Shown in pieces: positions 7,461 to 64,000 of a stretch of 64,000 bases of DNA. Position 1 is the stretch's first letter. Every line of letters starts with the position of its first letter. The notes below the pieces were generated by a model. The model was not told where the DNA came from. It ran no database searches and was given only the letters and a program-made list of their open reading frames with translations. The stretch lies in contig NZ_JMCB01000003.1 of assembly GCF_000737315.1 (NCBI RefSeq), positions 186,001 through 250,000 of the forward strand. Reading direction: 5' to 3'. The translations under genes were made by a program, and so were the position numbers. This DNA is from Hyalangium minutum. Lineage in GTDB: Bacteria; Myxococcota; Myxococcia; Myxococcales; Myxococcaceae.

Positions 7461-7484
7461 GCTAGGCGTTTCAGGAGAACCGGC

Positions 7485-12516: not shown

Positions 12517-12600
12517 CCTGCTCTTCTCCGGAGCGTCCCTCTTCACGAGGATCGTCTCCAGGCAAGGGCGCAATTCTGCTGAAGTTTTCGCACCGCCCGG

Positions 12601-12628: not shown

Positions 12629-12742
12629 TTTTCATACTGGCCCACTCCGCTTTCGCTTGGTGCCGGGGCGTGCTGGTCCGCTCCAGCGGAGAGTCCGCGC
12701 AGCCTTGACCGCGGCATCTCGCTGGATTGAAAGGAAGTGGCC

Positions 12743-13582: not shown

Positions 13583-13583
13583 G

Positions 13584-14345: not shown

Positions 14346-14349
14346 GAAC

Positions 14350-15516: not shown

Positions 15517-15702
15517 GCCGCCTTCTCCCCTGTGAGCGAGTGCTTGCTCGCTTTCTGAGAAAGCTAATGGGCCCTCCCTCGTTGCTCAACCTCCCACCCC
15601 CCACAAACTGTTGAATTCATTGGAGTCTTCCGGGGTTGTCCCAAAGTTCCGGGTTGAGAAAGGGCAGGGGCCTCATGGGGCGCTACGGACCCGGGCGAAT
15701 GT

Positions 15703-15731
15703 TTGACCCCCTGGGGGGCCACTGCTAAGGG
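15703..15731 (+). promoter_or_regulatory. Possible sigma-A promoter for scpA-scpB-rluB
   Basis: TTGACC-N17-TAAGGG with TG at the extended -10 position; the -10 match is weak. Confidence 0.3.
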
Positions 15732-15743
15732 GAAAGGCCTGAT

Positions 15744-16602: not shown

Positions 16603-16622
<20 letters not shown>
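15744..16622 (+). CDS. scpA: Segregation and condensation protein A
   Basis: FEGPLDLLLHLI, DIFDIP, AGEFLVMASTL..LKSRMLLP, DPRAELVRRLLEY, FLAILEMVK. Confidence 0.93.
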
Positions 16623-17598
<976 letters not shown>

Positions 17599-17620
17599 CG
17601 GGCACGAAAGCATCACGAAT

Positions 17621-21921: not shown

Positions 21922-21922
21922 T

Positions 21923-27831: not shown

Positions 27832-28758
27832 TCAAGGTGACGTCGCTGGCGCGGGTTGGATCTCCGCCAGCACTTTCTCGTCGATGTGGATCTGCGCACG
27901 CTCGCGCAGTTGGTGGACCAGCGTCTCCAGGGCCTGCGTGCGCCGCTCGGACAGCAGCCGGGTGGCGATGCGATCCTTCACCGACTCCAGCGGGTTGTTC
28001 AAGCCCGCCTGACGCAGCGTCAGCTTGAGGAGGTGGAAGCCTCTCTCCGTCTCCACCAGCGGCCCCACTTCCTGCGGCGACTGGAGCGTGAAGGCCGCCT
28101 GCGCCAGTGCCGTTCCCCACGCTTGCGACAGCTCCTCCGCTGTCCTCGGGCCCAGATCTCCACCCTGCGCCTTGCTGGCCGCATCATCCGAGCGCTCTCG
28201 TGCCAGCGCCTCGAAGCCGTCCTGGCCCGGAGCTCCGGTGGGCGCGCGCACCTTCGCCAGCAGCGCCAGCGCCTCCGCCTTCACTTGCGGCCGCCGGGCG
28301 TCTCCCGCCGCCGCCGCCAGGAAGATGTGGCTCATCCGCACCTGCTCCGGCCGGACGAACTCAGCCCGGTGCTCCTCGTAGTACTGGCGCACCTCCGCCT
28401 CGGACGGAGGCTTCATCTCCTCCGTCACCTGCTTGACCAGCCGTTGGACGATCAGCTTGCGCAGTGCCTGCTGGACCTCGGCGTCCTTGTCCAGGCCTCG
28501 GCGCTCCGCCTCCTGCGCCAGCACCTCGAACTGGATCATCCCGTCCAGGAACTCCTGCTTCCGCTCCACCGTGGTGTAGCGGCCTCGGATGAAGGGCGCC
28601 TGCTCGTCCAGCCGCTGCTTGTACTCCTCCGCCGTGATCGCCGAGGTCCCCACCGTGGCCACCACGGGCTCCGCGGGACGATCCTTCTCCTGCCCACGGC
28701 ACCCCAGGCCCCCCACCAGGCCCAGCACGCAGCAGGCCAGGAACACGCGCTCCGTCAT
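27832..28758 (-). CDS. Parvulin/PrsA-type peptidyl-prolyl isomerase lipoprotein (foldase 1, intact)
   Basis: ATG after GGAG; lipobox GGLGC; SurA-N-like helices; SHIFL, FEALARERSDDAASKAQGGDLG, GFHLLK. Confidence 0.88.
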   Translation of the reverse strand: MTERVFLACCVLGLVGGLGCRGQEKDRPAEPVVATVGTSAITAEEYKQRLDEQAPFIRGRYTTVERKQEFLDGMIQFEVLAQEAERRGLDKDAEVQQALRKLIVQRLVKQVTEEMKPPSEAEVRQYYEEHRAEFVRPEQVRMSHIFLAAAAGDARRPQVKAEALALLAKVRAPTGAPGQDGFEALARERSDDAASKAQGGDLGPRTAEELSQAWGTALAQAAFTLQSPQEVGPLVETERGFHLLKLTLRQAGLNNPLESVKDRIATRLLSERRTQALETLVHQLRERAQIHIDEKVLAEIQPAPATSP

Positions 28759-28893
28759 GTCGCTCCCATCGCTGATCTCGCGGACCGGATCCAGCGAGGC
28801 ATTTACCTGTAGCCAACATACAACGGGAAGTCCTAGGGTCTTCACTTCCGGTCATAGGAGGCGTGGAAGGAGCCTGTGGCTACGGGAGGTTGT

Positions 28894-29787
28894 GTGCGGC
28901 GCTGTCTCGGGTGCCTGATCGTCATCGTGGCGGCCTGTACCTCCGAGGCTCCCAGCACGGCTGGGGCCGACGCGGGCCGTCCCGTGGGCACCGTCGTGGG
29001 CCGCTTCGCAGGAGCCGAGGTCCTCACGGCCGAGGAGGTCTCGCGCGAGGCGGCGCGGCTGCCCCCCGCGCTCCGGGAGCAGTTCGAGACTCCCGCCGGC
29101 CGCCGTGAGTTCGCCCGCTCGCTGATCGACAAGCGCCTCCTGGTGCGCGAGGCCCAGCGCCGGAAGCTGACCGAGGATCCCGAGCTCCGCCGTCAGGTGC
29201 GCGAGTTGGAGGAGCGGCTGGCGGTGCAGGCGCTGCTGGCCCAGGAAGAGGCCGCCGCCGGGAAGCCCTCGGAGCAGGAGCTCCGAGCCTGGTTCGACTC
29301 GCACCGCGCGGAGCTGGCCCGGCCGGAGCAGGTGAGGGTGGGCCGTATCCTCGTGAACGTGGGCGCGAAGGCCTCCGAAGCGGAGCGCACCCGGGCCCGG
29401 CAAAAGGTGGAGGCGGCGGCAGCGCGGCTGCGGCGCGGCGAGTCCCTGGCGAAGGTGGCCCCGGAGGGTGAAGGCCCCGAGCGGATGAAGGGCGGAGAGC
29501 TCGGGCTGGTGGTCCGTGGAGGCGGGCTCGAGCCTTCCCTGGAGCAGGCCGCTTTCGCCCTGGAGCGCCCAGGCGCTGTGTCCGCGGTGGTGGCCCTGCG
29601 CGAGGGCTTCGCGGTGCTCACGCTCCTGGAGCGTAAGCCGCCGCGCGTGCCCACCTTCGAGGAGGTCCGCGCCGAGGTGGAAGGCCGCTTCGCTCCCGCG
29701 CACAAGCGGCAGATGTTCGATGCGCTTCTGGAGCGGCTGCGCCAGGAGGCCGGTGTCGAGCTCGTGGAATCCCGGGAGGCCCCATGA
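28894..29787 (+). CDS. Parvulin/PrsA-type foldase lipoprotein 2 (degenerate active site)
   Basis: GTG after GGAGG; lipobox IVAAC; GRILV, GGELG, EQAAFAL, GFAVL (both parvulin His replaced). Confidence 0.82.
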   Translation: MRRCLGCLIVIVAACTSEAPSTAGADAGRPVGTVVGRFAGAEVLTAEEVSREAARLPPALREQFETPAGRREFARSLIDKRLLVREAQRRKLTEDPELRRQVRELEERLAVQALLAQEEAAAGKPSEQELRAWFDSHRAELARPEQVRVGRILVNVGAKASEAERTRARQKVEAAAARLRRGESLAKVAPEGEGPERMKGGELGLVVRGGGLEPSLEQAAFALERPGAVSAVVALREGFAVLTLLERKPPRVPTFEEVRAEVEGRFAPAHKRQMFDALLERLRQEAGVELVESREAP

Positions 29788-32700
29788 GCTTACCGGGTGG
29801 ACGCATGCTGCGTGCCGCCGCGCTGCTCGCGCTGGTGCTGCCGCTCACGGCGTGGTCCGCCACGGTGACCGCGGCCTTTCCCCTCGTTCCCCTGAGGCCG
29901 GGCGCTACGACCGCGGAGGTGGGGGTCGAAGTCCAGGGGCCCGCGGAGCAGGTGCTGATCTCGGTCACGGGCCAGTCCGCGTCCCGGGGATCCTTCGCCT
30001 CGCTGGCCAACGTGGTGGTGGATCGGGATCAGGCCGGGGCCGTGTCCTTCCATACGCTCGTGACGTTCTCCCAGCCGTTCCCGGAGGATGGCGTGCTGGA
30101 GGTGGTCGCCCGGCCTGTGGGAGACGGAGAGGACACCTCTCTCACCACGCGCTTCGATGCCGCGGCCCCGCCGCCTCGCTTTGGCCCAACGCCCCTCCGT
30201 GTGCGGGCCGATCTCGACAACCAGACGATCATCCTGGAGCTGGCCTACGCGGGGAACGCGGTGGCTGCCGAGGCCTCCGTGGTGGGCGCCTCCGCCGAGG
30301 AGCTTCGCCGCGTCCAGGGCAGCCTCGAGGACGTCGAGCCCGTCTCCTTTGTCCAGGCCCGCCGCCTCCTGGCCCGGCCCTCCACCGCTACGCCGGGCCG
30401 CATCGTCTTTGCTGTTCCCCTGGGCACCGCGCCGATCCCTCATGACGGCGTGGTGATCGCGGATGTGGCGCTGAGGGATGCCTTCGGCCGCACGGTGCAC
30501 ACCTCGGCCGTCGAGTTCACCCAGGCCACCGCGTTCGATCCCGTGGTGGGTGTGTCCGTGGAGCCCTCGCCGCTGCTGCTCTCCGAGGGCTTCGGCCAGC
30601 GCGTGCCCCTGCAGGTAGCGGGCAGCTTCGCCATCGCGGGTGAGGTGGATCTGTCCGGTGCGCACCGGGGCGTGCAGTACCGCTCGCTGGACGAGGGCGT
30701 GGCCTCCGTCACCGAGGATGGTCAGGTGGTCGCTCGCGCCAATGGCGAGACGGACATCGAGATCTCCTACGCGGGCTACACCGCCACCGCGCATGTGGTG
30801 GTGGACTCCTCGGCGGTGGTGGAGCGGCTGGAGGTGATGCCGGAGGCTCCCGTCATTCCGCGCGTGGGAGGCTCGATCCGGCTGGGCCTGGAGGGCGTGC
30901 TGAGCGACGGGCGCCGGGTGGATCTGTCCTCCCGCACGCTGGGCACCACCTGGAGCAGCCTGGATCCCAGCGTGCTCACCGTCCACTCGGATGGGCGCGC
31001 GGTGGGCCTGCGCCCGGGCACCGCACGCGTGGAGGCCCGCAACGCCGGCTACTCCGCCCTGCGCGTCGTGGAGGTGCAGGATGGGCCTCCCGAGATCAGC
31101 CTCTCCGCGCCATCTCAGGTGGTGGAGGGTGCCGACTTCGAGCTCAAGGCTCGCGCCCAGGACGATGTCGCGCTGGCCTTCGTGGAGTTCCTTGTCAACG
31201 GGGTGGTCACCACGCGGCTGACGGCCCCTCCCTTCACGATCAAGCTGCGCGCCCCTCCCGTCGCGGGCGGAGAGATGGTGATCGGGGCGGTGGCGGTGGA
31301 CTCGCATGGCTCGCGGACCCGGGCCACGGACGTCACCTTGAAGGTGCAGCCCGGGCAGGGCGCCAGCTCGAAGACGATCGTCTATGAGACGCCCCTGCCG
31401 GGTGCGCTGCTGCTGGAGGGACTGCCCCACACGGTGAGCCTCACCAGTGGGGACGCGCGCAGTGGCACGCTCTCTCCACAGGACTTCCAGCTCGTCCGCT
31501 ACTACGCGGATGGGGCGCTCCTCGGCACGGTTCGCACGCCGCGCGTCGAGATGCGCAACCTGGAGGAGGATCCCACCGAGCCGCCTGAGTACGTCGCCGT
31601 GCCGCTGTGGGAGCTGAGCTATGTGCCGCGCGCGGGCACCGCCGGCACGGTCGTGGCGCTGTACGCCGAGGCTGTGGATGCCCGGGGTGCCACGGCTCGC
31701 GGGGCCACCATCCTGGTTCGGATCGCGCGGGATGGGCCGCCGCTCGTCACCCTCCGGAGTCCCTCGGGGCCTCGGGTGCAAGCCACTGCGGGCCGCCCCG
31801 TGCAGCTCACGGGCCTTGTCGAGGACGACACCGTGACGCTCGGGGTGGAGCTCTCCCTGTTGGTGGATGGTGCCCAGGTGAGCAGCACGCGGCTGGTAGG
31901 CGAGGGGCTCGGGGGCACCCGCGCGGGCTCCGCGCCCTTCTCGATCTCCTGGACGCCTCCCGTCTCCAGCATCGGCCGGCTCGTGCGGCTGCAGTTCATG
32001 GCCCGGGATGTGGGGGACCACGAGAGCCGCGCCTCACTGGAGGCCTCTGTCGTCGCGGATGCGCCTCCTCAGATCTCCCTCCAGACGCCACCGCCCGGCA
32101 GCCAGGTGCTCGCGGGCACGACGCAGTTCCTCACGGCCTCGGTGGTGGATGACAGCGCGGGGCCTGTCGAGGTGACCTGGCGCGTGAACGGCGTTCCCGT
32201 GGGGGCGTCGCGCTCGCCTCCGTACCGCACCTCCTGGTCCGTCCCCACGTCGGCCGCCGGGAGCACGCTCCAGCTTCAGGCCACCGCGCGGGACTCCACG
32301 GGCAACGAGGCCCAGGCCAGCGGAGAGCTCTTCGTCGTCAGCGACACCACGCGCCCCAGCATCTCCCTCGTGGTGCCGCGCCCGCTGGCGGAGGTGCCGG
32401 AGACACAGGATCTGGTGGTGTCCGTGGCGGGACAGGACGATGCCACCGTCAAGAAGGTGGAGGTGCTGCTGGAAGGGGAGGTGCTGGCCACCGACGATGA
32501 CCCCGGGCCCAACGGAACCCAGCTGGGCTCCTTCCTCACGCACACCCTGGTGCGCTCCGCCCAGCTCATGGGCCGCCAGCAGATCCGGCTGGGAGCGCGC
32601 GCGTATGACGCCTCGGGGAACGTGGGCTCGGCGCCCGAGGTGCTCGTCAAGGTGCTGCCCGATGCGCCGCCCACCGTGCGCTTCGTGCTCCCCGCGGCCA

Positions 32701-35700
32701 ACACGCGGGCCACCATCGGCACGCCGCTGGAGTTGATCGCCGAGGCCGATGACGATGTGGCCGTCTCTTCCGTGGAGTTCTTCGCGGACGGGAACTCTTC
32801 GTGCCGCGCCACGCTCCCGCCCTACCGGTGCACGATCACCGTGACGGGACCCGCCCGGACGCTCCACCTGCGGGCCGTGGCCTCGGATGCTGGAGGGCGC
32901 AGCAGCTCCGCGGAGGTGGCCGTCCAGGTCAGCGAGGATCGTGAGCCGCCGCTGGTGGCCTTCCGCTCTCCGTCCGAGGGCAGCTTCACCTTCGCCGGGC
33001 GGAACCTGTCCGTGGAGGTGGCGGCCAGTGACGACGTGGGCGTGCGCGATGTCCGGTTGGAACTGGACGGGCAGACGGTGGGCACCCAGAGCGGCGGCGT
33101 GGTGGATGGGCTCTACCGCCTCTTCCGCTGGCAGGTGCCCATTCCCGCGGGGGCGGCCGGTCACACGCTGGCATTCAAGGCGGTGGCCACGGACACCTCG
33201 GGCCTCACGCGCGAGCGCTTGCTGGAGGTTCGCGCCCGCAGGGATGAGGCGCCCGCTGTCTCGCTCACCTCTCCGGCCCCCAACAGCTTCTATAAGGAGG
33301 GAGAGGACGTCCGGCTCGTGGTGACGGTGGCGGATGACGAGGGCGTCATCGGGCTCGTGGGCCTGTCCGGTGGCCGCAGGCAGGGGACGTTGGCCCAGTC
33401 CGGGCCGCTGCTGGATGTCTCCCGGCCTCAGGCGCTTACCGTCCGCGCGCCCTCCATCTTCCGGGGTGAGCCTCCCACCGTGGGCGCCGAGGCGCGCGAC
33501 ACGGCCGGTCAGTCCGGTGTGGCCACGGTGATGCTGAACGTGGCGAGGGACCTCGAGCCGCCCTCGGCGCTGATGATCTCACCGCTGCCTCCCGCCACCG
33601 GCCACCTCCGGGTGAACGAAGGCGGCGCCTTCTCGCTGCGCGTGGAGGTGGAGGACGACGTGCGCGTGGTGCGCGTCGCGGCGGTGGTGGATGGGCAAGA
33701 GCTGCCCGTCGTGAATGGACGTGAGCCGCTGGGTCCTCAGAACGAGCGCTTCGAGGAGGTGCGTGTCCAGGATCCGGTGATGCCGGGGCAGATCATCGTC
33801 AGCCGCCGCTACCTGGGCACCTTCGCGGGGACGGCGAGCCTGGCGCAGTACTCGGTGGGGCTCCACACGCTGGCGGCCCGGGCCTATGACGCGGGCGGGA
33901 ATGCCACCACCACCCCGGCACTGTCCTTCGAGATCCTCGAGGTGCAGGATCTGGCACCGCCTCGGGTGACCCTGACGCTGGAGGGAGGCCCGGATGAGCG
34001 CACGTGCGTGGCCGGAGCGCCCATGAAGCTGCGGGTCTCCGCCACGGATGACGTGTCGATCCGGGAGGCTTCGGTCACCTTCGAGGGCCAGCCCGTGACG
34101 ATCCGAAACCCTCCGGAGCGCTCGCCTCGGAACTGGCAGGAGGAGATCCCCTTTCAGTTCCCGCCGCTCGGGACGGGCGGCCGCCGGACCGTCACCTTCC
34201 TGGCCCGCGTCACGGATGGAGCCCAGCACACTGGCGTGGTGAGTCGCACTTGCGAGCTGACGCCAGATGGGCCTCCGCAGATCCTGGTGGTGAGCCCCAC
34301 GGCGCGCGCGGCTCTCACGGAGGAAGGCACCGAGCCCGTCCAGGTGGACGTGAGCGATGACGTGGGCGTCCGGCGAGGGCTGAGGGTGCTGTCCACCTCG
34401 GCGGTGGCCGTGCCGGGCATCGGCAGCTTCGAGGTGACGGCGACCGCGGCGCATGAGGGACTGGGCGTCCCGAGCGCCACGCTGATCCCGGGCGATGGGC
34501 CTGGCTTCTCCGTCGAGGCCCTGGAGGGGCGGCTGCTGATCTCTCCGCCAGGGGAGGGGCAGGGGACGGGCACTACCGCACCGGGCCGTCTGCGGCTGAA
34601 CGTGGAGCCTTCTCCCGCGGGGCACGGTGCCTTGGCCCAGGTGCGCTTCCGCTACGTCGTGAAGCCAGGGCACGAGGGCAGCACTGCGCTCCAGTCGTTC
34701 CGCTCCGCATTCCCCGACGGCGTGGGCAGCGTCACGCTCTCCGCGCCTGCCTTCTCCGCGGATCTGTCGTTCCCCTCCCAAGACATCGAGATGGAGGAGG
34801 TGGACATCCAGTTGTCCAAGGCGTCCGCGAACGCCGAGGAACTGGCGGTGACCCGGCTGGGCCTGCGCGGGTGGGGCACGCCGCAGCTCCAGCTCCGTGC
34901 TGAGGCTGCCGGCGAGCGCGTGGCGGTGCAGCGGTGGAACACGGGGGTGGCGCCCTCCCGGCCCGGACAGGTGAAGCGGATCGACGAAGCGGTGTGGCTG
35001 CCTCGGGGGCAGGCGCCGCGGGACTCCCAGCTAACCGTGCTGGCCGAGGATGTGGCCGGGCTCGTGGGCCGCGTGGCGATCCCGATCGTCGCGCGCACGG
35101 ACACGGACCCGCCCACGGCCTCCATCGTCTCCCCCGGCAACGGCGCGTCGGTGGTGGAGGACACTGTCTTCGAGGTCCAGGTGAGCGCCCAGGACAACGC
35201 GCGTCTGGATCAGCTGGAGCTGTGGGTGGATGGGCAGTCGCGCCAGGTGATGCGCGTGGGACCCGGGCCGTCCGGATCGCCTCAGGCGCACCGGTTCTCA
35301 CTCTCCCTGCCGCTGCCGGCCTCGGGGTACCCGGCCGCGCTGTCGGTGGTGGCGCGGGATGGGGCGGGCAATGCCACGGCGTCGGACACAGCCTATGTGC
35401 GTGTCATCCCCGATGTGGCGCCGTCGGTGACGTTCCAGTCGTTGACCTCCGCGGTGGAGTCGTTCACCCGCACCGAGCTGGACAGCGGCTACGTCGTGAT
35501 GCTGCAGGGCGTCCCCGCCACGCTGGGGATGCTGCTGGAGGATGACGCGGGCCTGGCCTCCATGCGCGTCCAGTTCGGCGATCAAGTGGTGAAGGAGGAG
35601 TCCTTCACGGGCGCGCCGCTGACGGCCGGGCGGCAGGTGACGTTCACTCCGCCCGTGGGCCGGGACGGCGCCCCCGTGGTGCTGCTCGTGTCGCTCACGG

Positions 35701-53700: not shown

Positions 53701-56700
53701 ATGAAGTGGATGCGAGCGTGCCGCATGCTCCGGCGCTCGTGGCCTCCGTGCCTGTGGCAGGAGCCACAGGGGTGGTGGCGCTCGCGGATGCCCGCAGGTG
53801 CGTGGTGGGAGCCACGGCGCGGTGCTTCCGCGTGGAGGGAACCGCCTTGACGCTCCAGGGTGAAGCGCGGCTGCCGGACACGGCGATCGCCGCCGACGGT
53901 CCGGGGCCGTGGCTCCTGGCGGGCACGGCCAGCGGTCTGTCCGTGGTGGATGCGCGGGGAGCTCCCTCGATGGCGGGGTACTACCCGGCACTGGCGGGGC
54001 GGGTGGCTGCAGGGGACGGCCGCATCGTCGCGGCGGCGCCGGGCCGCAGCTCCCTCCTGAAGCTGCGGCGGAGCGTGGGAGCGCCCACGGTTCACCTGGA
54101 GCTTCCTCCCTCGGCGGCTCCTGGCGCGCGGGTGCCCGTGGTGGCCAGCGTGGAGGGGCTCTCGGACCCTCGGGATGGCTACACGGCGGAGCTGCGTGTG
54201 CGCGGCACGGCTGTCCAGGTGCTCAAGGGGCGGCTGCCGCAGTCCGTGGATCTGCCGCGTGACGGCACGGCGGCGCAGGTGGCCCTGCGGGTGGTGGATC
54301 TCGCGGGCCATGAGGCGCTCGCGCAAGGAACCGTGGCGCTCGTGGATGATGGGGCGGGCCCGGCGCTGGCGGCGCTGCAGGCGCGGGCGGAGGTGCCCTC
54401 GGGCGCCTTCTTCTCGCTGGCGGCGGTCCCGGCGGATCCCGCGCGGGTGGCCTCTGTCGAGTACTCCGTGGACAGCACGGTGCTGGGACGCGCGGATGCT
54501 CCGGCGCTGGCTTGGCGGCTGCGGGCTCCCACGGTGTCCACGGACACGGCCTTCACGGTGAGCGCGGTGGCATTGGACGCGCAGGGCCGCCGGGGCGCGC
54601 CGGTGCAGGCCTCGGTCTGGGTGCGGGCAGGAACGGGGGCGGCACTGCCCACGGTGTCCCTGGCGCGCGTGGGCACCGGGTCGATCCAGGAAGGCACGGA
54701 GGTGAGGGTCCGGGCCACGCTCACGCCGTCGGTCCCCGTGGCCGAGGTGCGCTTCAAGATGGACGGAGAGGAGCAGCAACGCCTGATGCTTCCCCCGTAT
54801 GAGGCGGTGCTGCGGATGCCGGTGGGAACGGGCTCGCGCGGCGTCACAGTGGAGGCGGTGGCGGTGGATGACCAGGGCCGCGAGTCGGCCGCCGCGCTCC
54901 TACCGCTCACGGTGGTGGATGACCTGACGCCTCCGGTGGTGGCCCTCGAGGTGGATCCCTCGGGAGAGGTGCTGACAGCTGGGAGCCGTGTGCGAGCCAC
55001 CGCGATCGCGTCCGATGGAGGAGCGCTCGAGTCCTGGTCCGTCCGGGCGCTGTTGGCGAACGTGGAACTGGCCAGCGGAGGTGGCCGGCTGGACTTCACC
55101 GTGCCCGCGAGCACTCCGGCCGGGACCTTGGTGGAGATCGTCGCCACGGCGCGGGATGTGGCGGGCAACGTGGCGACGAGCCGGGTGACGAAGACGGTGC
55201 TGGCCCCCGTCCTGCCCGACGGCGGCGTCGTGGTTGCCGGGGACTTCGTGGGAGCGGACCGCCTGACCCTGCGCGGGGACTTCGTCTATGCGACGACCCC
55301 GAGAGGACTGGCCGTGGGGCGGGTGCGGTGGGGAGAGACGCCCACGATCGAGCCGGTGAGCTTCCTCGCCACGGACGTCGCGCCTTCCTCGTTGGCGGTC
55401 CAGGGCCCGTGGGCGGTGCTGGTGCTGCCAGGGAGAGGGCTGTCGATCGTCAACATCGCGGATCCGGCGCAGCCCCGGGTGCGCGGCACGCTCGCGGGCA
55501 CCTTCACCAAGGCCCTGGCAGGGGATGGGCTCTATGTGCAGGGGAACTCCCTTTTCGAACTCGATCTGGAGGTGCCCTCCACTCCCGTGCTGAGGAACAT
55601 GGCGGTATCGGCAACGGCGGTGGACGGCACGGCCGACGGGGTCGTCTTCAACTCCTACTCCTACCTCATGGTCCGCGCGCGGCTGACCAGCGGCCTCAGT
55701 GGCTACCTGTCGCTCCTGTGGCCCGTGGGAGTGCCTCAGACGGCTCGCTGGAACGATGGGAAGCTGCTGGTCGGGACGGATCGCTCTCTCGCCGTGCTCG
55801 TCCGCAGTGGGGACAGCCTCGGCGTGGCCCAGGAGGTACCGCTGCCCGCGGGGGTTCGCGCCATGGCCGTGGCGGATGGCCGGGTCTGGCTCGCCTGCAC
55901 GGACGGCAAGCTGAGATGGGTGGACGTCCGCAACCCCACGGCTGCCCAGGTCATCGCCCAGGAGGCGCTCCCGGCCCGTGCGCTCGAGGTCTCCGGAGGG
56001 TTGATGCTCGCCACGACGGCGCAGGGGATCTTCGTGCGCCGGCTTCCGAACCTGGGCGCGGCGGGCAGTGCTCTGAGTACCCCGGTGGGAGGTCTGACCC
56101 TGGATGACGCGCCTCGGGCGGTGACGTCGTTCCGGCGGGGCGTATTGGTGGCGGCAGGGCTCGCCGGCGTGCAGCGGATCGTCCTGGACGATCCTTCCCA
56201 CCCCAGCCGCGTCTCCCAGTCCGTGGCGGGGTTGGCCCTGAAGCAAGTCGAGCGCACGGGCGAGCAGGTCTTCACCCTGAATGGCACGACGCTCTCGATC
56301 CACGTGGAGCAGTGGGATGGAAGCCTGGTGAGGGATGGCGGTGCCTCGGATCGGCTGGCGGCGCTCGGCAGCGTGGAGCGCTTCGCCGTCTCGCCGAGGA
56401 GGCTGTGGGCGGTGTCGGGAGGCACGGTGTCCTCGATGGGGCTGCCCTCGGTGGATCAGAAGGTGTCCCTGCTGCTGGGCTCCGCCACGCTGGACGTGGC
56501 GGGAGACGAGACGCGTGCCGTGGTGGCCCTGGGCCGCGCGGGCGCGGCGGTGGTGCTGGTAGATGGCGCGGGGACGCTGAGGCTGGGCGCGATGATTCCG
56601 GAGGTCCACACGGACGCGGTGGCGGTGGACGGCGACCTCGCGCTGCTGGGAGGCCCCTCGGGCTTGGCGGTGGTGGATCTCAGCGCTGCGAGCGGGCCCG

Positions 56701-59700
56701 TGCGCCGGGCCTCGCTGCCCACGGCGGGAGCGGTGCGCCGTGTGAGGCTGGAGGGGCGGCTGGCCCTGGTGAGCGAGGGCTCGGCGGGAGTCGAGCTGTG
56801 GAATGTCTCCCAGCCCGCCGCGCCGGTGCTCCTGGGCAAGCTGTCCACGCCGCGCGCCGAGGACGCGGTGGTGGCCGCGGGGCACATCGTCGTCGCGGAC
56901 AGTGTGGCGGGCGTAAAGGTCTTCTCCCTCCCCGCGGCTGGGGTGAACCCGGTGGTTCGGGTGGTGCCGGACGCGTCCAGCGTGGAGGCGGGGTCCTGGC
57001 TGGAGGTCTCGGCGCGGGTGTCGGGCGTGCAGGTGGATACGGCCGAGCTGCTCGTGGAGGGGCAGGTGCTCAGCCGGATGGACGAGCGGGCGGCGGTGGG
57101 CCGCTACCTCGTGCCAAAGCAAGCGGTGGTCGGCCGAGAGCTGGCGGTGCAGGTCCGGGCGCGCACCGCCTCCGGAGCCGAGACACTGTCGGCTCCGGTC
57201 TTCGTGAGGGTGTCAGCGCCCACGAACCTGCCGGAGATCGTCCTCTACCCGAACTCGCCCAACTCCGGCTGGTCGTACTACTCCGCGAGCAGCATCTCCG
57301 TGTCCGCGGTCTACGGGGGGGCCCTGGCCCCCGTCTCGGCGCGGGTCCGCTGGGCGGGACAGGACCTGGGAGCGCTGACGGTCATGGACACCTCCATCCA
57401 TGGGGAGCTGCGCATGCCGGTGGTGGGAGCGGACACGACGGGGACGCTGGAGTTCGTGCTCGTCGATGCGGCGGGGCGGATCAAGACGGCCTCCGTCCCG
57501 TCCATCAGGGTGCTGGCTCCCCAGGATCCGCTCCCCCAATCCGTCTACGGGCTGCCCTCCCGCCTGTACTCGGCGCCCTATGACAACGCCTTCACGGCTC
57601 AGGCCTACTGCTACACTTGGTGCAACGTGCGCGTGGAGCGCAATGGCGTCACCATCGCGAGCACCCTGAGTACCTCCCCGTACACCGGGTGGCGAAGCCT
57701 GCCAGTCTCGCTGGTGCTTCCGGGAGAGACCACTGGAACGCAGCAGACGCTGACGATCGTGGCCGAGGACTCGGCAGGCCGTCAGGTCCGGCAGGAGCAG
57801 CGCTACACCGTGCTCCGGGATGATCTGGTCCCGTCGGTGTCCCTCTACGCGCCGTACTCCGCTTCCGAGGGCGCGACTGTCTCCGTCTCCGCCTACGCCT
57901 CGTTCCCACCGGGGCATCAGATCCGGTCGCTGCGGTTGTTGGCCAATGGGGTCGAGATCGCCTCCGTGGTGGGCCCCACGCTATCGGGCGTGCCCTATAC
58001 GTTCCCCAGTGTCAGCGTCACCTCGACCGTCCGCTTCGAGGCGATTGCCACCGATCACCTGGGGCGCGAGGGACGCGCGGAGCAACTCGCCCAGGTTCTT
58101 CCAGACGCGCCGCCCAGCGCATCTATGTATGCGTCCCCAACGCCTGTGCAGGGCTACCCGATCTACGCGTGCATCAATGCCGCGGATGACGTGAGGCTCA
58201 CGGCCGTGACCTTCAAGGCGGGAGAGGAGACGTTGTGGAGCTGCACGAGCGGCTGCTCGGCCTACTTCTCCACGTCCTTCTCCAAGTGCGTCCAGAGCGC
58301 GTCTCGCTACACAGGGAGCGAGATCGTCCTGAGCGCGGAGCTCACCGACAGCGTCGGCCATACTGTCACGGAGACGCGGCCCTACGCGGTGGCGCAGAAC
58401 CAGCCGCCGACGGTGACGCTAACGTCCAAGAGCTATCTGGTGGCCGGACAGGGGGGGACCCCTGTGTACGCGAGTGCCTATGATGAGGCCCACATGCAGT
58501 CGCTCAAGGTGCGGGTGGGCGACACCCTGATCGCGCAGAGCACCTCCTCCTACTATGCCCAGAGTGGTCTCTCCTGGAGCGGTTCCTACACGCCCAGCTC
58601 TCCGGAGTCGTTCGTTCTCGAGGCGGTGGCGGAGGATGGGGCGGGCCTACAGACCGTCCTGCGCAAGCAGGTGCCTGTCTTGCCCGCGGGGTCGGGGCAG
58701 AGCTGTGAGAAGCCCGTCCCGATCGGCATGGACCTCACGCTGAGGCCGCCTCAGGTGCAGCTGCAGAGCACGTTCTACTCGCGGTGTGGGACCTTCTATA
58801 CGGGCTCGTGGCACACCCTGCCGTTCGACGGGCCCGTCGAGGAGATCTCCTTGAGGGCCTATTCCGACTCTTGGTACTGGCCAACCCTCATCGTGAAGGA
58901 CGGCTGTGACGCCTCGGCGGCGCAGTTCTGTCCATATTCCTCGTCGTCTTCCGATGTCTCCACGCGCGCCACCTCGCTCTCCTCCCAGGCGCGTGTCTTC
59001 CTCTCTCAGGTCACAGGGGACGTTTATGTCTCCTTCGCCCGGCTGGGCATGGGCGCCCGGTGCATCCCGGGCTCTACCTCCGTGGTCTGCTCCAACAGCG
59101 TCTGCCGTGAGCAGAGCAGTGGTGAGTACCGATGCGCTCCCGAGGCCTGCAGGGATGGCCTGGACAATGACGGCGATGGGCGCGTGGACTTCCCAGCGGA
59201 GCCGGGCTGCACGTCCGCGACGGACGACGACGAGACAGACCCCGTGCCGCTCCCCACCTGCGCCAACGGGGTGGACGAGGATGAGGATGGGGCCATGGAC
59301 TGGCCGGCGGAGACGGACTGCCCCTCTGCCTCCAGCAACGGGGAGCACCCGACCTCCTGCCAGGTGACGCCGCTGACCCTGCTGGGCTCCCGCATGCGGA
59401 TCGACTTCTCTCAGGCCTCGAATCTGGACGATCTGGTGTGCAGCACCTCCGGCTCGGGGCCAGACCAGGTCGTGAGGGTGGAGGTGCCAGGCCAGGCCTC
59501 GCTCTCTGGATCGCTGATGGAGCCGTACGGGTACCCAAAGACGCTGGCGCTCCGAAAGAGCTGCACGGACGGAGGAGCGTTCCTCGCCTGTGCTCCGGCG
59601 GAGTGGCAATCGGTTTGGGATGATGGACGTTGGGTATCTCAGTCTGTGGCCATGACGAGCGCGGAGGTGGGGCCCGGCTCCTACCTGTTCGTGGCGGACT

Positions 59701-61250: not shown

Positions 61251-62116
61251 GGCCCTCAAGCGGAATAGGCAGCTGGCTCGTGTTGGCCCTCGCGGTGCTG
61301 TCCGGGTGCGATGACTCGCGAACGGTGGCGAAGGTGGGGCGCACGGGCCTGACGGTGGAGGACGTGACGCAGCTGCGCGCCGCGCAGAGCCCGAGCGTCC
61401 GCGCCGCGCCGGAGCAGACGCTGGAGGTGCTGGTGGATCGCGCCCTGCTGGCCGAGGAGGCCCGGCGCCAGAAACTGCACGAGCAGCCCACGGTGAAGGC
61501 CCAGCTCGCGGCCGCCGAGCGGGAGCTCCTGGCGCATGCGGTGCTGGAGCGGGCGGTGGCTCCCAGCGTGACGGACGAGGCGCTGCGCGCGCGCTACGAG
61601 GCCGCGCGCTCCCGGCTGGAGCGCCGCGAGGTGCACGTGGCCCAGATCTTCGCGCGGATGCCCGAGGGCTCTGATGAGAAGACTCGGCGCCAGGCGCAGG
61701 TGCGCATCAACCAAGCCTATGCCCGGCTCGCGGGCGGAGAGCCTTTCGAGACCGTGGCGCGCGAGCTGTCCGAGGACTTGGTGAGCGCGCCCCAAGGAGG
61801 AGAGCTCGGCGTGGTTCGGGAGGGAGGAGTGGATCCAGCGTTCTTCGCCCAGGCCGTGGCGCTGGCCGCAGGCGCTTGGTCCAAGCCGTTCATCACGCCC
61901 TTCGGCTGGCACGTGGTGAAGGCGCTTGAGGCGTCGAAGACGGTGGTGCCCTCCTTTGATGAGGCGAGAGGTGTGCTGGAGTCCGAGGCGCGCCAGGAGG
62001 CCCAGGCGAAGCTGATGGAGCGGCTGCGTCAGGAGATCTCGGTCCGTCGCTACCCGGAGCGGCTCAAGCTGGCAGAGGAGAAGAGCAAGCCCCAGGGCGA
62101 GGGGGAGGCGAGATGA
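61247..62116 (+). CDS. Parvulin/PrsA-type foldase lipoprotein 3 (partly degenerate)
   Basis: ATGA overlap with giant gene stop; lipobox VLSGC; AQIFA, FETVARELSEDLVSAPQGGELG, FGWHVVK. Confidence 0.87.
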   Translation: MRPSSGIGSWLVLALAVLSGCDDSRTVAKVGRTGLTVEDVTQLRAAQSPSVRAAPEQTLEVLVDRALLAEEARRQKLHEQPTVKAQLAAAERELLAHAVLERAVAPSVTDEALRARYEAARSRLERREVHVAQIFARMPEGSDEKTRRQAQVRINQAYARLAGGEPFETVARELSEDLVSAPQGGELGVVREGGVDPAFFAQAVALAAGAWSKPFITPFGWHVVKALEASKTVVPSFDEARGVLESEARQEAQAKLMERLRQEISVRRYPERLKLAEEKSKPQGEGEAR

Positions 62117-64000
62117 TCCGCCGCGCTCCGCGATGGCTGTGGCTCGTGCTGGGGCTGGTGACACTGGCCACGGCGTGCGACCGGCGCTCCAGCGAGGAGC
62201 CCGCGTCCGCCGCGCCGCCCGCGCAGGCTGCTCAACAGGCACAGGCGCTGTCCGGAAGCACGTGCGACAGCGTGGCTCCCACCGGCATGGCGCCGGGGTG
62301 GAAGGTGGCGCCGATCCAGGCTGCGGGCCAGAACGTCGCGAGCACGATCTTCCCGGCGTCCGTCGGTGAGCGGGCGATCCTGATCCTGCAGGAGTCGGCG
62401 GAGGCGCTGAATCAGGAGTTCAAGACGGAGGCCTCCCTCAACGGTGTGGACTGGGTGGCCATCTCCCGGCAGAGGCCGCTGGCGGCGCGGGTGGTGCAGC
62501 TGAGTGCCTCGAACCGGCTGGAGCTGGAGACGAACGGAGGCGTGGCACGGACGTCCGTGGCGGCGCTGTCGCCGCTGCCGTGCGCGGCGGTGGAGGCACG
62601 CGTGACGCACGCGGGAGGCTCGGCCGCCACCGTGGAGACGCGCACCTTCACATGGCCCATGGGAGCAGGCCCGGCCCTGCTGGTGGTGGAGTCGGGCAGT
62701 GCGTCGCAGGTGACGGGGCGGGTGGTGCTGGGCAGCCTGACGGTGCAGGTGCCGGCCGCAGGCCAGCTCCCCGTGGTGGAGGTGGTGTCGCCGCAGGCGA
62801 GCAACACGCTGCGAGTCGAGGTGGGAGGCAGCGCGGGCGCGTGGGTCCGGGCAGTGGTGGTGGAGCCGGACATGTTGCCGCCCATCGTGAGCATGGGGCA
62901 GCCCGCGGAGGGCGCGCAGCTGAACGCCTCGCCGGTGGAGGTCCAGGGCACCGCGGGAGCCGGGGCGGTGGCCGTGAAGGTGGGGGCGGTGGACGCGGTG
63001 CTGTCGCAAGGCCAGTACACGGCGCAGGTGCCGCTGGTGGAGGGGCCCAACGCGCTGGTGGCCGAGGTGAGAGACCAGTGCGGCAACGTGGCGCGAGTGT
63101 GCCGGCCGGTGGTGCTGACGACGGCGCCGCCCACCGTTGTTATCGAGGGAGTTACTGACGGCCAGGTCTCGCGCGAGCCACTGCACCCCACGTGGACGGT
63201 GACGAGCAGCGGCCCGGTCACGGTGGAGGCGACGCTGGATGGCGCGCCCTTCGTCGGCGGCACGGCTGTAACGGCCGAGGGCTCGCACGAGCTGCGGGTC
63301 ATGGTGCGGGACGCGGCGGGCCGGGAGGCGCAGGCGCAGGTGGGCTTCGCGATCGACACCACACCGCCGCGACTCACGCTGACAGGAGTGGAAGAGGGGG
63401 AGCGGCGCAATACTCCGGCGGTGCTCGGCTTCACGGTGGAGGAGGAGCACCCGGGCTCGGTGGAGGCCACCCTGGATGGGGCTCCCATGGCCTCGGGGGA
63501 CACGGTCTCGGCGGAGGGCGCGCATGTGTGGACGGTGGCGGCCACGGACGCGGCGGGCAACCGGTCCGAGGTGCAGCGCCACTTCGTGGTGGATGTGACG
63601 GCTCCCACGCTGGAGGTGCTCTCACCCGCGCCGGGCAGCTTCACCCAGGCGGGCTCCGTCGAGGTGGTGGTGGCGGCGGCGGATGACGGGCCGGTGGCGG
63701 GCGTGTGGCTGGGGAACGCGGAGCTGACGCTCGGCACGGACGGGAAGTACCGGAGCCTGGTGGTGTTGGAGGAGGGCAGCAACCTGCTGGTGCTGGTGGC
63801 TCGGGATGCGGCGGGCAACAGCGCGCAGAGCTCGCTGGCCGTGACGCGGGACTCCACGCCGCCCCAGCTCACCCTCACCACCCCGGCCGAGGGCGCGAAG
63901 GTGGCGGGGGACTCGGTGCAGGTGGAGGGACAGGCGCAGGACACCACGCCGCTCACGGTGCGCGTGGCGGGGATGACCGCGGCGGTCGCGGCGGATGGTC
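62113..64000 (+). CDS. Ig-repeat lipoprotein, 3' truncated by window edge (absent from the ORF track)
   Basis: ATGA overlap; hand translation MIRRAPRWLWLVLGLVTLATAC (lipobox), then D..PP.[VL] linkers and A.DAAGN Ig motifs; no stop seen before 64000. Confidence 0.85.
   Translation, partial: MIRRAPRWLWLVLGLVTLATACDRRSSEEPASAAPPAQAAQQAQALSGSTCDSVAPTGMAPGWKVAPIQAAGQNVASTIFPASVGERAILILQESAEALNQEFKTEASLNGVDWVAISRQRPLAARVVQLSASNRLELETNGGVARTSVAALSPLPCAAVEARVTHAGGSAATVETRTFTWPMGAGPALLVVESGSASQVTGRVVLGSLTVQVPAAGQLPVVEVVSPQASNTLRVEVGGSAGAWVRAVVVEPDMLPPIVSMGQPAEGAQLNASPVEVQGTAGAGAVAVKVGAVDAVLSQGQYTAQVPLVEGPNALVAEVRDQCGNVARVCRPVVLTTAPPTVVIEGVTDGQVSREPLHPTWTVTSSGPVTVEATLDGAPFVGGTAVTAEGSHELRVMVRDAAGREAQAQVGFAIDTTPPRLTLTGVEEGERRNTPAVLGFTVEEEHPGSVEATLDGAPMASGDTVSAEGAHVWTVAATDAAGNRSEVQRHFVVDVTAPTLEVLSPAPGSFTQAGSVEVVVAAADDGPVAGVWLGNAELTLGTDGKYRSLVVLEEGSNLLVLVARDAAGNSAQSSLAVTRDSTPPQLTLTTPAEGAKVAGDSVQVEGQAQDTTPLTVRVAGMTAAVAADG

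Follow-up and report, generated by a model that had tools for sequence, protein, structure and literature searches.

The soil myxobacterium Hyalangium minutum carries a cassette of about 48 kb, conserved in myxobacteria and under purifying selection (dN/dS 0.3-0.4), in which genes for three parvulins, a 10,488-aa exported protein and a 4,682-aa Rhs/YD lipoprotein lie together. On balance, we favour reading this cassette as a Sec-dependent, T6SS-independent Rhs antagonism system that includes dedicated chaperones of the periplasm and a giant, co-evolving surface protein. The locus was analysed in a window of 64,000 nucleotides from H. minutum DSM 14724 (JMCB01000003.1:186001-250000); coordinates below are those of the window.

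Organization of the locus

The gene for parvulin A (foldase 1; 27832..28758, minus strand; Pfam Rotamase_2 65 bits, SurA_N_3 36 bits) is divergent and faces a four-gene operon on the plus strand. This operon comprises the genes for parvulin B (foldase 2; 28876..29787; Rotamase_2 60 bits), the giant protein (29784..61250; called from the ORF, GC3, Pfam, collinear relatives and dN/dS), parvulin C (foldase 3; 61247..62116; Pfam Rotamase 68 bits) and the Rhs/YD lipoprotein, the first 629 residues of which are encoded in the window (62113..64000; Pfam on this part, and the record of the full product). All three parvulin genes exceed the Pfam gathering thresholds, and ORF call and Pfam agree with an earlier note on this DNA, which had placed three such genes on the flanks of a 10,488-aa reading frame. 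The operon is translationally coupled, and the three ATGA stop/start overlaps that the note had read at 29784, 61247 and 62113 are all present in the sequence.

The divergent genes are separated by 117 bp of lower GC content (28759..28875; read from the sequence), presumed to be a bidirectional promoter region, within which the Shine-Dalgarno-like GGAAGGAG lies immediately 5' of the GTG of parvulin B. No sigma-70 consensus was found in this region, which is uninformative for myxobacteria. No outer-membrane translocator is visible, and no exporter gene was seen next to the cassette. Neither the cassette nor its flanks contain T1SS, TPS, T2SS or T9SS genes, and no features of the T1SS, TPS or T9SS type turned up.

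The downstream Rhs/YD protein

The gene that begins at 62113 runs past the end of the window, as had been anticipated, to approximately position 76161 (record position 262161). What had been described as an Ig-repeat lipoprotein partner of the giant is merely the start of its 4,682-aa product, a predicted Rhs/YD polymorphic toxin. The part in the window has a lipobox and Glucodextran_B, Big_13 and Big_7 domains (Pfam). From N- to C-terminus, the full product has the lipobox, Ig domains (seven Glucodextran_B, Big_13 and Big_5), a CarboxypepD_reg domain, about 1,200 unassigned residues, DUF6531, the RHS repeats/YD shell, a PT-HINT domain and a C-terminal tip; its first ~1,200 aa are Ig-like. Precomputed family assignments on this product name DUF6531, RHS_repeat, TEN_YD-shell and PT-HINT, and the Rhs region matches solved Rhs cocoon structures. 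Pfam also detects RHS_repeat (113 bits) and DUF6531 on L087, and an ortholog has PT-HINT (64 bits) together with the canonical Rhs core-end motif. By this architecture, the second large product is a teneurin-like Rhs/YD cocoon protein that carries a pretoxin-HINT domain and ends in a short tip; we infer its identity as an Rhs toxin from the family architecture and one ortholog. The protein is collinear with its ortholog through aa 3068, and its lipobox Cys is conserved in five orthologs.

Conservation of the cassette in other genomes

Co-conservation of the parvulin genes with the giant gene, the absence of which had been set in advance as grounds for refutation, was seen at both ends of the cassette in relatives that are 36-77% identical and have different outer flanks. 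At the 5' end, one relative (L084) has parvulin A on the minus strand, parvulin B on the plus strand and the giant gene, flanked by DUF362; a second (L085) has parvulin B followed by the giant gene; and a third (L086), with a Che/response-regulator flank, has B- and C-type parvulins and the giant gene, with C upstream of the giant, unlike the order in H. minutum. At the 3' end, the order giant/parvulin C/Ig-Rhs is found in L001/L097, in a Cystobacter MAG (L031), where both ATGA overlaps are present, and in a Pyxidicoccus isolate (L088). The 5' and 3' synteny comes from different short contigs, the full five-gene cassette being documented only in H. minutum. Every product of the cassette has a Sec-type export signal, and the signals are likewise kept in orthologs: Sec type-I for the giant, and lipoprotein signals for the Rhs protein and parvulins B and C. 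The multi-gene unit that had been proposed is thus borne out, in that parvulin genes accompany the giant gene across genomes while the outer flanks change.

Four genomes share the giant/parvulin C/Ig-Rhs order, with stop/start overlaps of 4 nt, at 36-77% identity, and the Rhs ortholog is conserved throughout at 52-77%, unlike typical strain-specific Rhs cargo. Both observations make it unlikely that the giant and its parvulins form one unit and the Rhs toxin another, functionally independent one, brought together by chance, with the parvulins serving the giant only and the Rhs gene a passenger. Such independence would nonetheless suit the placement of both parvulin types upstream of the giant in L086, the Omnitrophota giant genes that keep a neighbouring Rotamase_2 gene without an Rhs gene, the differing C-termini of the giant family members P0049 and P0064, and the mobility of Rhs genes in Myxococcus xanthus (PMC10433427).

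The giant exported protein

The giant has a predicted mass of 1.086 MDa and a pI of 4.9, and the in-frame GC3 of its ORF is 0.88. Its reading frame is not a product of chance, because its internal repeats have diverged to only 30-50% identity, because it is collinear with relatives 32-46% identical in one BLAST alignment of 6,900-7,600 residues, and because its dN/dS is approximately 0.33 against the Cystobacter MAG ortholog. It opens with a type-I (Sec) signal peptide of ~25 aa (MSLPGGRMLRAAALLALVLPLTAWS; 29784..29858, plus strand, as are all the following features), recognized by its charged, hydrophobic and AxS regions; this stops just ahead of the conserved mature N-terminus and is kept in position in P0003, P0004 and P0005, in agreement with the Sec signal claimed for the giant. 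No second hydrophobic 19-mer was found anywhere in the protein.

More than 60 diverged beta-sandwich and beta-propeller domains are strung in fixed order along the giant, dozens of them recognized by Pfam. The N-terminal module (29859..32033) is family-specific, with approximately seven beta-sandwich domains in the AlphaFold model (pLDDT 76) and nearly no Pfam assignment; Foldseek returned generic multi-Ig/MG strings only, and some 20-25 representative proteins match the whole module, each at its own N-terminus. It is followed by an array of diverged Big_7 Ig-like domains, at least 12 in number (~aa 760-2800; 32061..38183; 378 bits summed over 11 stretches in Pfam), the copies being 30-46% identical to each other, and by four to five supermodules of LVIVD (beta-propeller), IPT/TIG and Big_5 domains (~aa 3000-7300; 38781..51683; Pfam on successive 1,000-aa slices). 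The last 1,200 aa form a variable C-terminal module (57648..61247), supported by NCBIfam NF033662 (102 bits, five repeats) and the Cys distribution: five acidic double-disulfide repeats (CxNGxDDDGDGxxDxPxDPGC) are interspersed with beta modules, there is a conserved ~140-aa tip, and 41 of the 59 Cys of the giant fall within its last 1,000 aa. Homologs sharing this Cys/Asp-rich module are P0001, P0002, L008, L031 and L088. The giant had been described as filled with xPP linkers and PP[YF] turns, which is an overstatement: proline motifs are hardly enriched (87 PP against 67±8 expected; seven PP[YF] in 10,488 aa), and the argument from them is weak.

The adhesin-type domains of the giant (Big_7, TIG, Big_5 and LVIVD), the Ig-like beginning of the downstream protein and the co-conserved parvulins would each be expected of a surface assembly whose role in adhesion, matrix or prey contact is purely structural, served by three private rotamases and Ig partners and devoid of toxin function. 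We consider this quite improbable, as DUF6531, RHS repeats, a YD shell and PT-HINT downstream are the defining polymorphic-toxin architecture, and the active site is degenerate in two of the three 'rotamases'. With that architecture, the locus looks like a weapon of antagonism or kin discrimination rather than a purely structural assembly.

There is only a slim chance that the giant stays inside the outer membrane, whether as a scaffold in the periplasm or across the envelope or as a precursor of spore coat or matrix, and is permanently partnered by the parvulins. Stretched out, a chain of more than 60 beta-sandwich domains would measure micrometres and be hard to fit in the periplasm, and both the Ig/TIG/LVIVD architectures and the Ca2+/disulfide repeats are characteristic of extracellular proteins. 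Retention would, however, explain why a protein with a Sec signal has no exporter gene beside it, and is in keeping with our finding no C-terminal sorting tag or beta-barrel in the giant; it also has a precedent in TDE1658, a SurA/PrsA chimera bound to its periplasmic client MOSP (PMC5643300).

The three parvulins

Parvulins A, B and C are ancient paralogs (23-31% mutual identity) that form three position-specific orthologous groups. The earlier note had counted three foldases or rotamases; the three parvulin genes stand (Pfam), but alignments indicate that only foldase 1, parvulin A, keeps both catalytic His. Parvulin A (308 aa, with an identical product in the public record) is PrsA/PEB4-like, with SurA_N-like and parvulin domains, and preserves 'SHIFL' and 'GFHLL' when aligned to PEB4; its ortholog in L084, also divergent, is 49% identical. 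Its N-terminus is hydrophobic with a non-canonical lipobox, and the protein is either lipid-anchored or signal-anchored.

Parvulin B (303 aa) is a lipoprotein (lipobox VAAC) of parvulin fold in which both catalytic His are replaced, by Arg and Ala: 'GRILV' stands opposite 'RHILV', and 'GFAVL' opposite 'GYHII', of HP0175. Orthologs in three relatives (L084_b, L085_b and L086_a; 47-55% identical) carry identical substitutions. Without either catalytic His, parvulin B is probably a chaperone or holdase only; inactive parvulin domains are known in SurA P1 and PpiD. Parvulin C (289 aa; lipobox LSGC) is also a lipoprotein and, aligned to SurA, has Gln in place of the first catalytic His and retains the second. 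Its gene shares ATGA overlaps with the giant gene upstream and the Rhs gene downstream, and its orthologs are 75% (L001_c), 67% (L031_c), 48% (L088) and 40% (L086_b) identical. Public annotation begins parvulin C at GTG 61280; we favour the ATG at 61247, as first proposed, because the later start truncates the signal peptide, which is full-length in orthologs.

The best PDB matches of the parvulins are PEB4 (C. jejuni, 3rfw), HP0175 (H. pylori, 5ez1), PrsA (B. subtilis, 4wo7) and SurA (E. coli, 1m5y), with which they share a helical N/C chaperone module into which the parvulin domain is inserted. Identity to these is low (E 1e-8 to 1e-14), and the B-type differs from them in having lost both catalytic His; PEB4 and SurA are soluble, whereas the H. 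minutum proteins are membrane-anchored. Despite this general PrsA/PEB4/SurA architecture, it is scarcely credible that the parvulins are housekeeping periplasmic chaperones (SurA/PpiD/PrsA equivalents) whose adjacency is fortuitous, as three paralogs in one locus each hold their own position by the giant while the outer flanks differ, none reaches the NCBIfam equivalog cut-offs for housekeeping PrsA, SurA or PpiD, and the B-type active site is lost in all orthologs.

Relationship to known systems

The closest parallels to the Rhs protein are Rhs4/Rhs5 of M. xanthus, where kin discrimination independent of a T6SS is mediated by large Rhs proteins (~4,000 aa) with a signal peptide (PMC10433427), and WapA of Bacillus. 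Shared features are a length of ~4,000-4,700 aa, an N-terminal signal of Sec type, an RHS/YD core, a polymorphic C-terminal region and a context lacking PAAR/VgrG; with Rhs4/Rhs5, the myxobacterial host is shared too. Unlike Rhs4/Rhs5, the H. minutum protein is a lipoprotein with an Ig-domain N-terminus of ~1,200 aa, is conserved across genera rather than prophage-borne, and has a gene in translational coupling with those for a parvulin and the 10,488-aa protein; no accessory parvulin or giant genes are reported for Rhs4/Rhs5 in the literature searched.

A PrsA-like parvulin lipoprotein is likewise encoded beside a large exported envelope protein in the PrtM/PrtP pair of Lactococcus lactis. 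The two genes are divergent there, and the PrtP protease client is ~1,900 aa long. That system is Gram-positive, with a single chaperone and one client, whereas in the diderm H. minutum three paralogs, all diverged and two of them degenerate at the active site, would serve two clients totalling 15,170 aa. PrtM is specific for its co-encoded protease (PMC3307742), and a Rotamase_2 PPIase gene is conserved next to the giant genes (>10,000 aa) of Omnitrophota, for which roles in attachment and predation were proposed (10.1101/2023.11.21.568195). Private parvulins for large envelope proteins are thus already known, contrary to the claim that giant surface proteins lack private PPIases. The Omnitrophota loci belong to another phylum, differ in domain content and include more than 10 genes for a T2SS/T4P-like apparatus as well as pilZ genes, whereas the H. 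minutum cassette has no secretion apparatus but three parvulins and an Rhs toxin.

Very large multi-Ig surface proteins also include the T1SS giant RTX adhesins LapA and SiiE and the TPS protein CdiA, whose variable C-terminus further resembles that of the giant. Unlike these, the giant has a Sec signal peptide and neither RTX repeats nor a TPS domain, and no ABC/MFP/TolC or TpsB genes were found near it. Tc toxins (TcA with TcB/TcC) and teneurins offer a lead only: they too have an RHS/YD cocoon around a C-terminal toxin and a large, Ig-rich, co-encoded partner, and the TTR-like (CarboxypepD_reg) domain ahead of the YD shell is reminiscent of teneurins. However, domain searches detected no TcA-type (VRP1, TcA_TcB_BD) or SpvB domains in the giant or the Rhs protein, and the giant, a linear string of beads, shows no hint of a pentameric injector.

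A proposed mechanism

Under the antagonism reading that we favour, the giant and the Rhs protein, both huge, proline-rich (8%) and beta-rich, would leave SecYEG unfolded and be captured as they emerge by the membrane-tethered PrsA/PEB4/SurA-like parvulins. Parvulin A would act as a true prolyl isomerase, and parvulin B, perhaps also C, as holdases, averting aggregation and degradation and ordering the folding of domains. Binding or adjacency need not mean that a parvulin is required: Par27 binds FHA, yet FHA secretion proceeds without it (PMC8151025). The C-terminal repeats of the giant would then be locked by disulfide formation and Ca2+ binding. The Rhs lipoprotein would encapsulate its C-terminal toxin, free it by autoproteolysis and, as the large signal-peptide Rhs proteins do in M. 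xanthus, take part in contact-dependent antagonism or in kin discrimination; the co-evolving giant may be a surface fibre or adhesin that contacts the target or presents the Rhs protein. The cassette may offer a handle on the export of large Rhs toxins without a type VI secretion system.

Gene organisation of the cassette

The window spans positions 186001-250000 of contig JMCB01000003.1 (assembly GCA_000737315.1), from Hyalangium minutum DSM 14724T (PMC5441343). Its GC content is 70%, as a result of which an ORF listing in all six frames is crowded with shadow ORFs, and these were filtered by GC at the third codon position (GC3). The filtered gene set contains every element named in the earlier note. 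The parvulin gene f1 (parvulin A) lies on the minus strand at 27832-28758, has an ATG start, and is represented by a 308-aa product on the public record. A divergent intergenic region of 117 bp, which holds a Shine-Dalgarno-like GGAAGGAG, separates it from the plus-strand parvulin gene f2 (parvulin B, 28876-29787). This is followed, also on the plus strand, by the ORF of 10,488 aa (29784-61250; the giant), the parvulin gene f3 (parvulin C, 61247-62116) and a lipoprotein ORF which has its start at 62113 and is cut by the window end. We refer to these five genes as the cassette. The three ATGA stop/start overlaps previously reported at 29784, 61247 and 62113 were located at exactly these positions. 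Public annotation starts f3 at GTG 61280 (278 aa), and the charged N-region of the lipoprotein signal peptide is thereby lost; because the signal peptides of orthologs are full-length, we favour the ATG at 61247, with its ATGA overlap with the giant gene. A promoter scan yielded no match, which carries no information in a myxobacterium of 70% GC.

Two long antisense 'ORFs', of 2,994 aa (43302-52286) and 1,561 aa (36375-41060), are found on the minus strand within the giant gene; we rejected both as genes, as they are shadow ORFs that arise because GC3 in the sense frame is so extremely biased.

The outer flank of the cassette in the window is made up of housekeeping genes (ScpA/B, RluB-like, HEAT, cNMP-binding, MshEN and TPR) that are not common to the loci of relatives. 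Upstream of the cassette lie genes for a protein with TPR and two cNMP-binding domains (21656-24169), for a lone MshEN domain (24166-24900, minus strand) and for a TPR protein (25801-27171). In the ATPases of T2SS and T4P, c-di-GMP is bound by MshEN domains. The upstream MshEN, cNMP and TPR genes were rejected as members of the system, as they are not kept beside the cassette in either of two related loci (L084 and L086). Further upstream, in the region 9169-14345, genes for a XerC/D-type tyrosine recombinase (9169-10110) and a metallophosphoesterase precede a stretch of low GC (0.61 versus ~0.70; GC3 0.60-0.69). Its products are proteins with no Pfam match, together with DUF6310/DUF6491 (12737-13582) and DUF5953 (13137-14345) proteins, the latter two being overlapping alternative ORFs. 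This region may be a small islet acquired horizontally.

Three parvulins with different active sites

All three parvulin genes encode products that score above the Pfam gathering cut-offs for Rotamase and Rotamase_2 (PF00639/PF13145; 27/21.7 bits), at 65/54 bits for f1, 60/43 for f2 and 50/68 for f3, as the earlier note would lead one to expect. A helical N/C chaperone module of the PrsA/PEB4/SurA kind surrounds the parvulin domain in each of them, with near full-length alignments of f1 (33-271) to PEB4 and of f2 (84-294) and f3 (56-262) to HP0175; f1 also matches SurA_N_3 (36 bits). None reaches the NCBIfam equivalogs PrsA, SurA, PpiD, NifM, EpsD or TDE1658 (best scores 78, 58 and 67 bits, versus cut-offs of 109-493).

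We aligned f1-f3 with seven parvulins from related loci (L084_a, L084_b, L085_b, L086_a, L086_b, L001_c and L031_c). The ten sequences fall into three groups that track gene position: an A-type (f1 and L084_a, 49% identical), a B-type (f2, L084_b, L085_b and L086_a, 47-55%) and a C-type (f3, L001_c, L031_c and L086_b, 40-75%), with an identity of only 23-31% between groups. All three parvulins of the cassette are under purifying selection (dN/dS 0.28-0.42).

Parvulins have a conserved pair of catalytic histidines, His59 and His157 in Pin1 and His8 and His84 in Par10. Both are retained in f1 when it is aligned to PEB4 (3rfw). The corresponding positions hold Arg and Ala in f2, and Arg and Ala/Ser across the B-type orthologs, when compared with HP0175 (5ez1). 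In f3 the first position is Gln and the second His, and C-type orthologs are variable there (H, Q or A). Thus, the description of the three genes as foldases or rotamases holds for their parvulin domains and fails for a uniform activity, since f1 has both histidines, f2 none and f3 one; judged by these aligned residues, f1 is the only one that would count as an enzyme. The most economical reading of the alignments is that an old triplication was followed by specialisation into one putative isomerase and one or two putative holdases.

A megadalton protein of fixed architecture

The giant has a predicted mass of 1.086 MDa and a pI of 4.9, with Big_7, IPT/TIG, Big_5 and LVIVD domains identified by Pfam. 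The protein is proline-rich (8.0%); the earlier statement that it is full of xPP linkers and PP[YF] turns was not borne out, as it has 87 PP pairs versus 67±8 in shuffled sequences and only seven PP[YF].

A HMMER search, run exhaustively over 1.84 billion representatives, found about 20-25 that match the whole 750-aa N-terminal module of the giant (residues ~10-750) at their own N-terminus. Several of these align to the giant in one collinear BLASTP match, for example over residues 27-6901 (46% identity), 6-7639 (41%) and 32-7479 (32%), which indicates that domain order is fixed in the first ~7,500 residues and has been retained despite deep divergence. The remaining ~3,000 residues at the C-terminus, by contrast, differ among family members, counted here as P0046-P0064 and 145 representatives at E<=1e-30. 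For example, the homologous proteins P0048, P0049, P0052, P0057 and P0064 have in common a strictly collinear core of ~7,500 aa (32-46% identity) and have unlike C-terminal ends, with a Cys-rich, He_PIG-like domain in P0049 and an acidic tail in P0064. The giant therefore belongs to an unnamed family, whose members are recognised by the 750-aa module at the N-terminus together with the core of ~7,500 aa, and in which a conserved shaft combined with a variable tip calls to mind polymorphic surface proteins. The giant could in principle be an assembly artefact or the product of recent repeat expansion; we rejected both, as its internal repeats have a mutual identity of only 30-50% and it is collinear with distant relatives. 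The dN/dS is ~0.33 relative to the ortholog in a Cystobacter MAG. We conclude that the giant is encoded by a genuine gene of considerable age.

In an AlphaFold model (pLDDT 76) the N-terminal 750 aa form about seven beta-sandwich domains, for which Foldseek returned nothing beyond generic multi-Ig neighbours. The model of the C-terminal 360 aa (pLDDT 46) is unusable for fold search, and a PDB sequence search with the last 2,788 aa found no relatives. Five acidic double-disulfide repeats (NF033662) lie within the last 1,200 aa (57648-61247), as do 41 of the 59 cysteines, which is consistent with an oxidising extracytoplasmic location. We take the NF033662 repeat to resemble thrombospondin type-3 Ca2+-binding repeats. 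A contig scan with the C-terminal alignment was seeded on the ubiquitous 'NG.DDDGDG' repeat and recovered mostly unrelated loci (CPR, DPANN, Kofleriaceae and others), the only true relatives being L008 and the Cystobacter MAG locus (L031). The repeat itself (CxNGxDDDGDGxxDxPxDPGC) was seen in exported proteins of very distant lineages (loci L003-L082), namely Kofleriaceae, Bradymonadia, Bdellovibrionota, the candidate phyla radiation (Peribacteria and Parcubacteria) and Nanoarchaeota and Woesearchaeota archaea.

The downstream lipoprotein is an Rhs protein

The locus runs past the window end, as anticipated: in the public record the gene starting at 62113 encodes 4,682 aa, which puts its predicted end near record position 262161. 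Precomputed Pfam assignments for this product are Glucodextran_B, Big_5, CarboxypepD_reg, DUF6531, RHS_repeat, TEN_YD-shell and PT-HINT. Our own domain scans, which covered the first 3,334 aa (record L087), place Ig domains at residues ~260-1220, followed by a stretch of ~1,200 aa with no Pfam assignment, DUF6531 near residue 2460 (33.8 bits) and RHS repeats from residue ~2700 (112.6 bits). Among solved structures, the RHS portion matches the Rhs cocoons 8qja, 8h8a and 7pq5. The core-end motif, of the PxxxxDPxGL type, was read in an ortholog (L097; ENA contig_3132) as '...NPWLYGRGNPMTFMDPAGR', after which come PT-HINT (64 bits) and ~110 residues that remain for a tip. Given DUF6531, the RHS repeats, the core-end motif and PT-HINT, the 'Ig-repeat lipoprotein' would be the N-terminal part of a polymorphic toxin of the Rhs/YD type. 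The description as an Ig-lipoprotein partner was thus right as to the lipobox and the Ig domains, and took the N-terminus of a 4,682-aa protein for the whole. With an Rhs/YD shell and an N-terminal plug domain (DUF6531) both found, the protein is, by its domain content, assigned to the known class of Rhs/YD polymorphic toxins. The lipobox Cys is kept in five orthologs. A metagenome scan with the distal piece of the protein returned only generic RHS proteins, at 24-30% identity.

Conservation of the cassette across genomes

Synteny on the 5' and 3' sides comes from different short contigs, and the complete five-gene unit is present on one contig only in Hyalangium minutum. On the 5' side, a Myxococcaceae MAG (L084) has a divergent SurA_N-parvulin gene, a co-directional parvulin gene and a giant gene (product 50% identical), with DUF362 genes in the outer flank; L085 has a parvulin gene and then a giant gene (49%); and L086 has two co-directional parvulin genes and then a giant gene (43%), beside chemotaxis and response-regulator genes. 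In L086 the C-type gene lies upstream, beside the B-type gene, indicating that gene order has changed and the association has been retained. On the 3' side, the contig_3132 locus (L001/L097) has the giant C-terminus, a parvulin gene and an Ig-Rhs gene, and the same order of giant, parvulin and Ig-Rhs genes is found in the Cystobacter MAG, with both ATGA overlaps, and in the isolate Pyxidicoccus sp. 3LG (L088). Co-conservation of parvulins and giant, which the earlier note had set as its own test, was therefore found in L084-L086, L001/L097, L031 and L088, in which the outer flanks differ. By this comparative test of gene neighbourhoods, the predicted chaperone genes are dedicated to the cassette.

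The contig_3132 locus (ENA ERZ25039597, 605-635 kb of a 656-kb contig) has many frameshifts, and its giant and Rhs genes are each split into at least six called ORFs with Arg/Cys-rich out-of-frame tails. As the frame of its Rhs gene changes five times and the encoded protein nevertheless stays collinear with that of H. minutum up to residue 3068, we attribute the fragmentation to assembly error, which implies that protein databases hold many artificial fragments of the giant/Rhs family.

A more distant locus (L089; ENA ERZ22157276 ctg13356l, 1-18011) encodes two Ig proteins, one with Ig repeats (>1,910 aa) and one of 759 aa, along with a transglutaminase-core protein and, separately, a DUF6531-RHS protein of >2,356 aa, with no parvulin in view (1-18011). 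We rejected it (P0040) as an ortholog of the cassette, since only the Ig repeats are common to both, the RHS gene is separate and no parvulin is in view; it may represent a related arrangement of Ig proteins plus Rhs that is devoid of private chaperones.

Export route and proposed mechanism

Parvulins B and C, like the giant and the Rhs protein, carry export signals, and parvulin A has a hydrophobic N-terminus with a non-canonical lipobox. The earlier claim that the giant, unlike T1SS adhesins, has an N-terminal Sec-type signal was upheld: its type-I signal peptide is kept in orthologs and ends directly before the conserved mature N-terminus, and a scan of the whole chain found no other hydrophobic segment. 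No exporter gene was found within the readable 10 kb on either side of the cassette at any locus.

Delivery by outer-membrane exchange would be improbable by analogy, as antagonism by Rhs4/5 of M. xanthus persists without such exchange (PMC10433427). The T1SS, two-partner secretion (TPS) and T6SS routes were rejected on the following grounds. The N-terminal signal peptide sets the giant apart from T1SS RTX adhesins, and it gave no match to HemolysinCabind and has no T1SS transporter genes (ABC, MFP or TolC) nearby. Its N-terminal 750 aa are beta-sandwich domains, which does not fit the N-terminal Haemagg_act domain of two-partner secretion (TpsA/CdiA), and no TpsB gene was found near it in the window or in L084-L086. 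As for T6SS effectors, which are recognised by PAAR/VgrG linkage, the lack of a signal peptide and an EagR-type chaperone, the Rhs protein differs in that its lipoprotein signal is kept in five orthologs; no PAAR was found within its residues 1-3334, and there are no T6SS genes in the window or in L087/L097.

A Sec-dependent scheme can be proposed by analogy with known families. The parvulins would be tethered to the membrane in the periplasm, where they would capture the emerging chains of 10,488 and 4,682 aa (~1,200 prolines together), in the manner of PrsA, PEB4, SurA and PrtM with their clients. A C-terminal toxin would be enclosed in the Rhs cocoon and freed by autoproteolysis, and the cassette may serve contact-dependent antagonism or kin discrimination, as do the large signal-peptide Rhs proteins of M. 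xanthus. More speculatively, the giant could form the surface fibre by which contact is made or the Rhs protein is presented, and its variable C-terminus might set target specificity. A fuller reading, which we hold to be unlikely, is that the cassette is a self-contained and unrecognised route of contact-dependent toxin delivery in diderms, operating without T1SS, T5SS or T6SS, in which a relay of three specialised parvulins (an isomerase and two holdases devoid of catalytic activity) would thread, fold and assemble both the Sec-exported megadalton fibre and the lipoprotein with the Rhs cocoon, and the variable C-terminus of the giant would decide target recognition.

Relation to known systems

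The idea that private PPIases for large surface proteins are unprecedented has to be abandoned. PrtM/PrtP is an established case in which a single large envelope protein has a parvulin lipoprotein of its own (PMC3307742), and in Omnitrophota a conserved Rotamase_2 PPIase adjoins giant genes, along with T2SS-like loci (10.1101/2023.11.21.568195); the PPIase beside a giant gene is shared with the cassette, whereas the T2SS-like loci are a feature of Omnitrophota. The SurA/PrsA chimera TDE1658 has been proposed to remain bound to its client MOSP (PMC5643300). Par27 binds FHA and yet is dispensable for FHA secretion (PMC8151025), which calls for caution in deducing function from association alone.

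A literature search found no publication that connects Rhs toxins with parvulins of their own or with a giant Ig protein encoded alongside. The parts of the cassette are individually known, and what appears to be new is their combination: three specialised parvulins, a megadalton protein of fixed architecture and an Ig-Rhs lipoprotein in one conserved, translationally coupled unit appear to be undescribed. The association of giant genes with Rotamase_2, noted once in Omnitrophota, is hereby extended to the cultivable H. minutum DSM 14724 and also to Pyxidicoccus sp. 3LG. The cassette further provides a natural experiment, in which three ancient parvulin paralogs at one locus have intact, half-degenerate and fully degenerate active sites, and which could separate the roles of isomerase and holdase in the folding of beta-rich secretory proteins of extreme length.

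In M. xanthus, delivery of large signal-peptide Rhs proteins is independent of T6SS, and myxobacterial kin discrimination by such proteins needs neither T6SS nor outer-membrane exchange; this raises the question of the export, folding and presentation of myxobacterial Rhs proteins of ~4,000 aa (PMC10433427). The cassette offers genetically testable accessory candidates for the export of large Rhs proteins, namely its three dedicated parvulins together with the co-evolving giant of 1.09 MDa, and these candidates for the export pathway of large myxobacterial Rhs toxins sit in cultivable strains.
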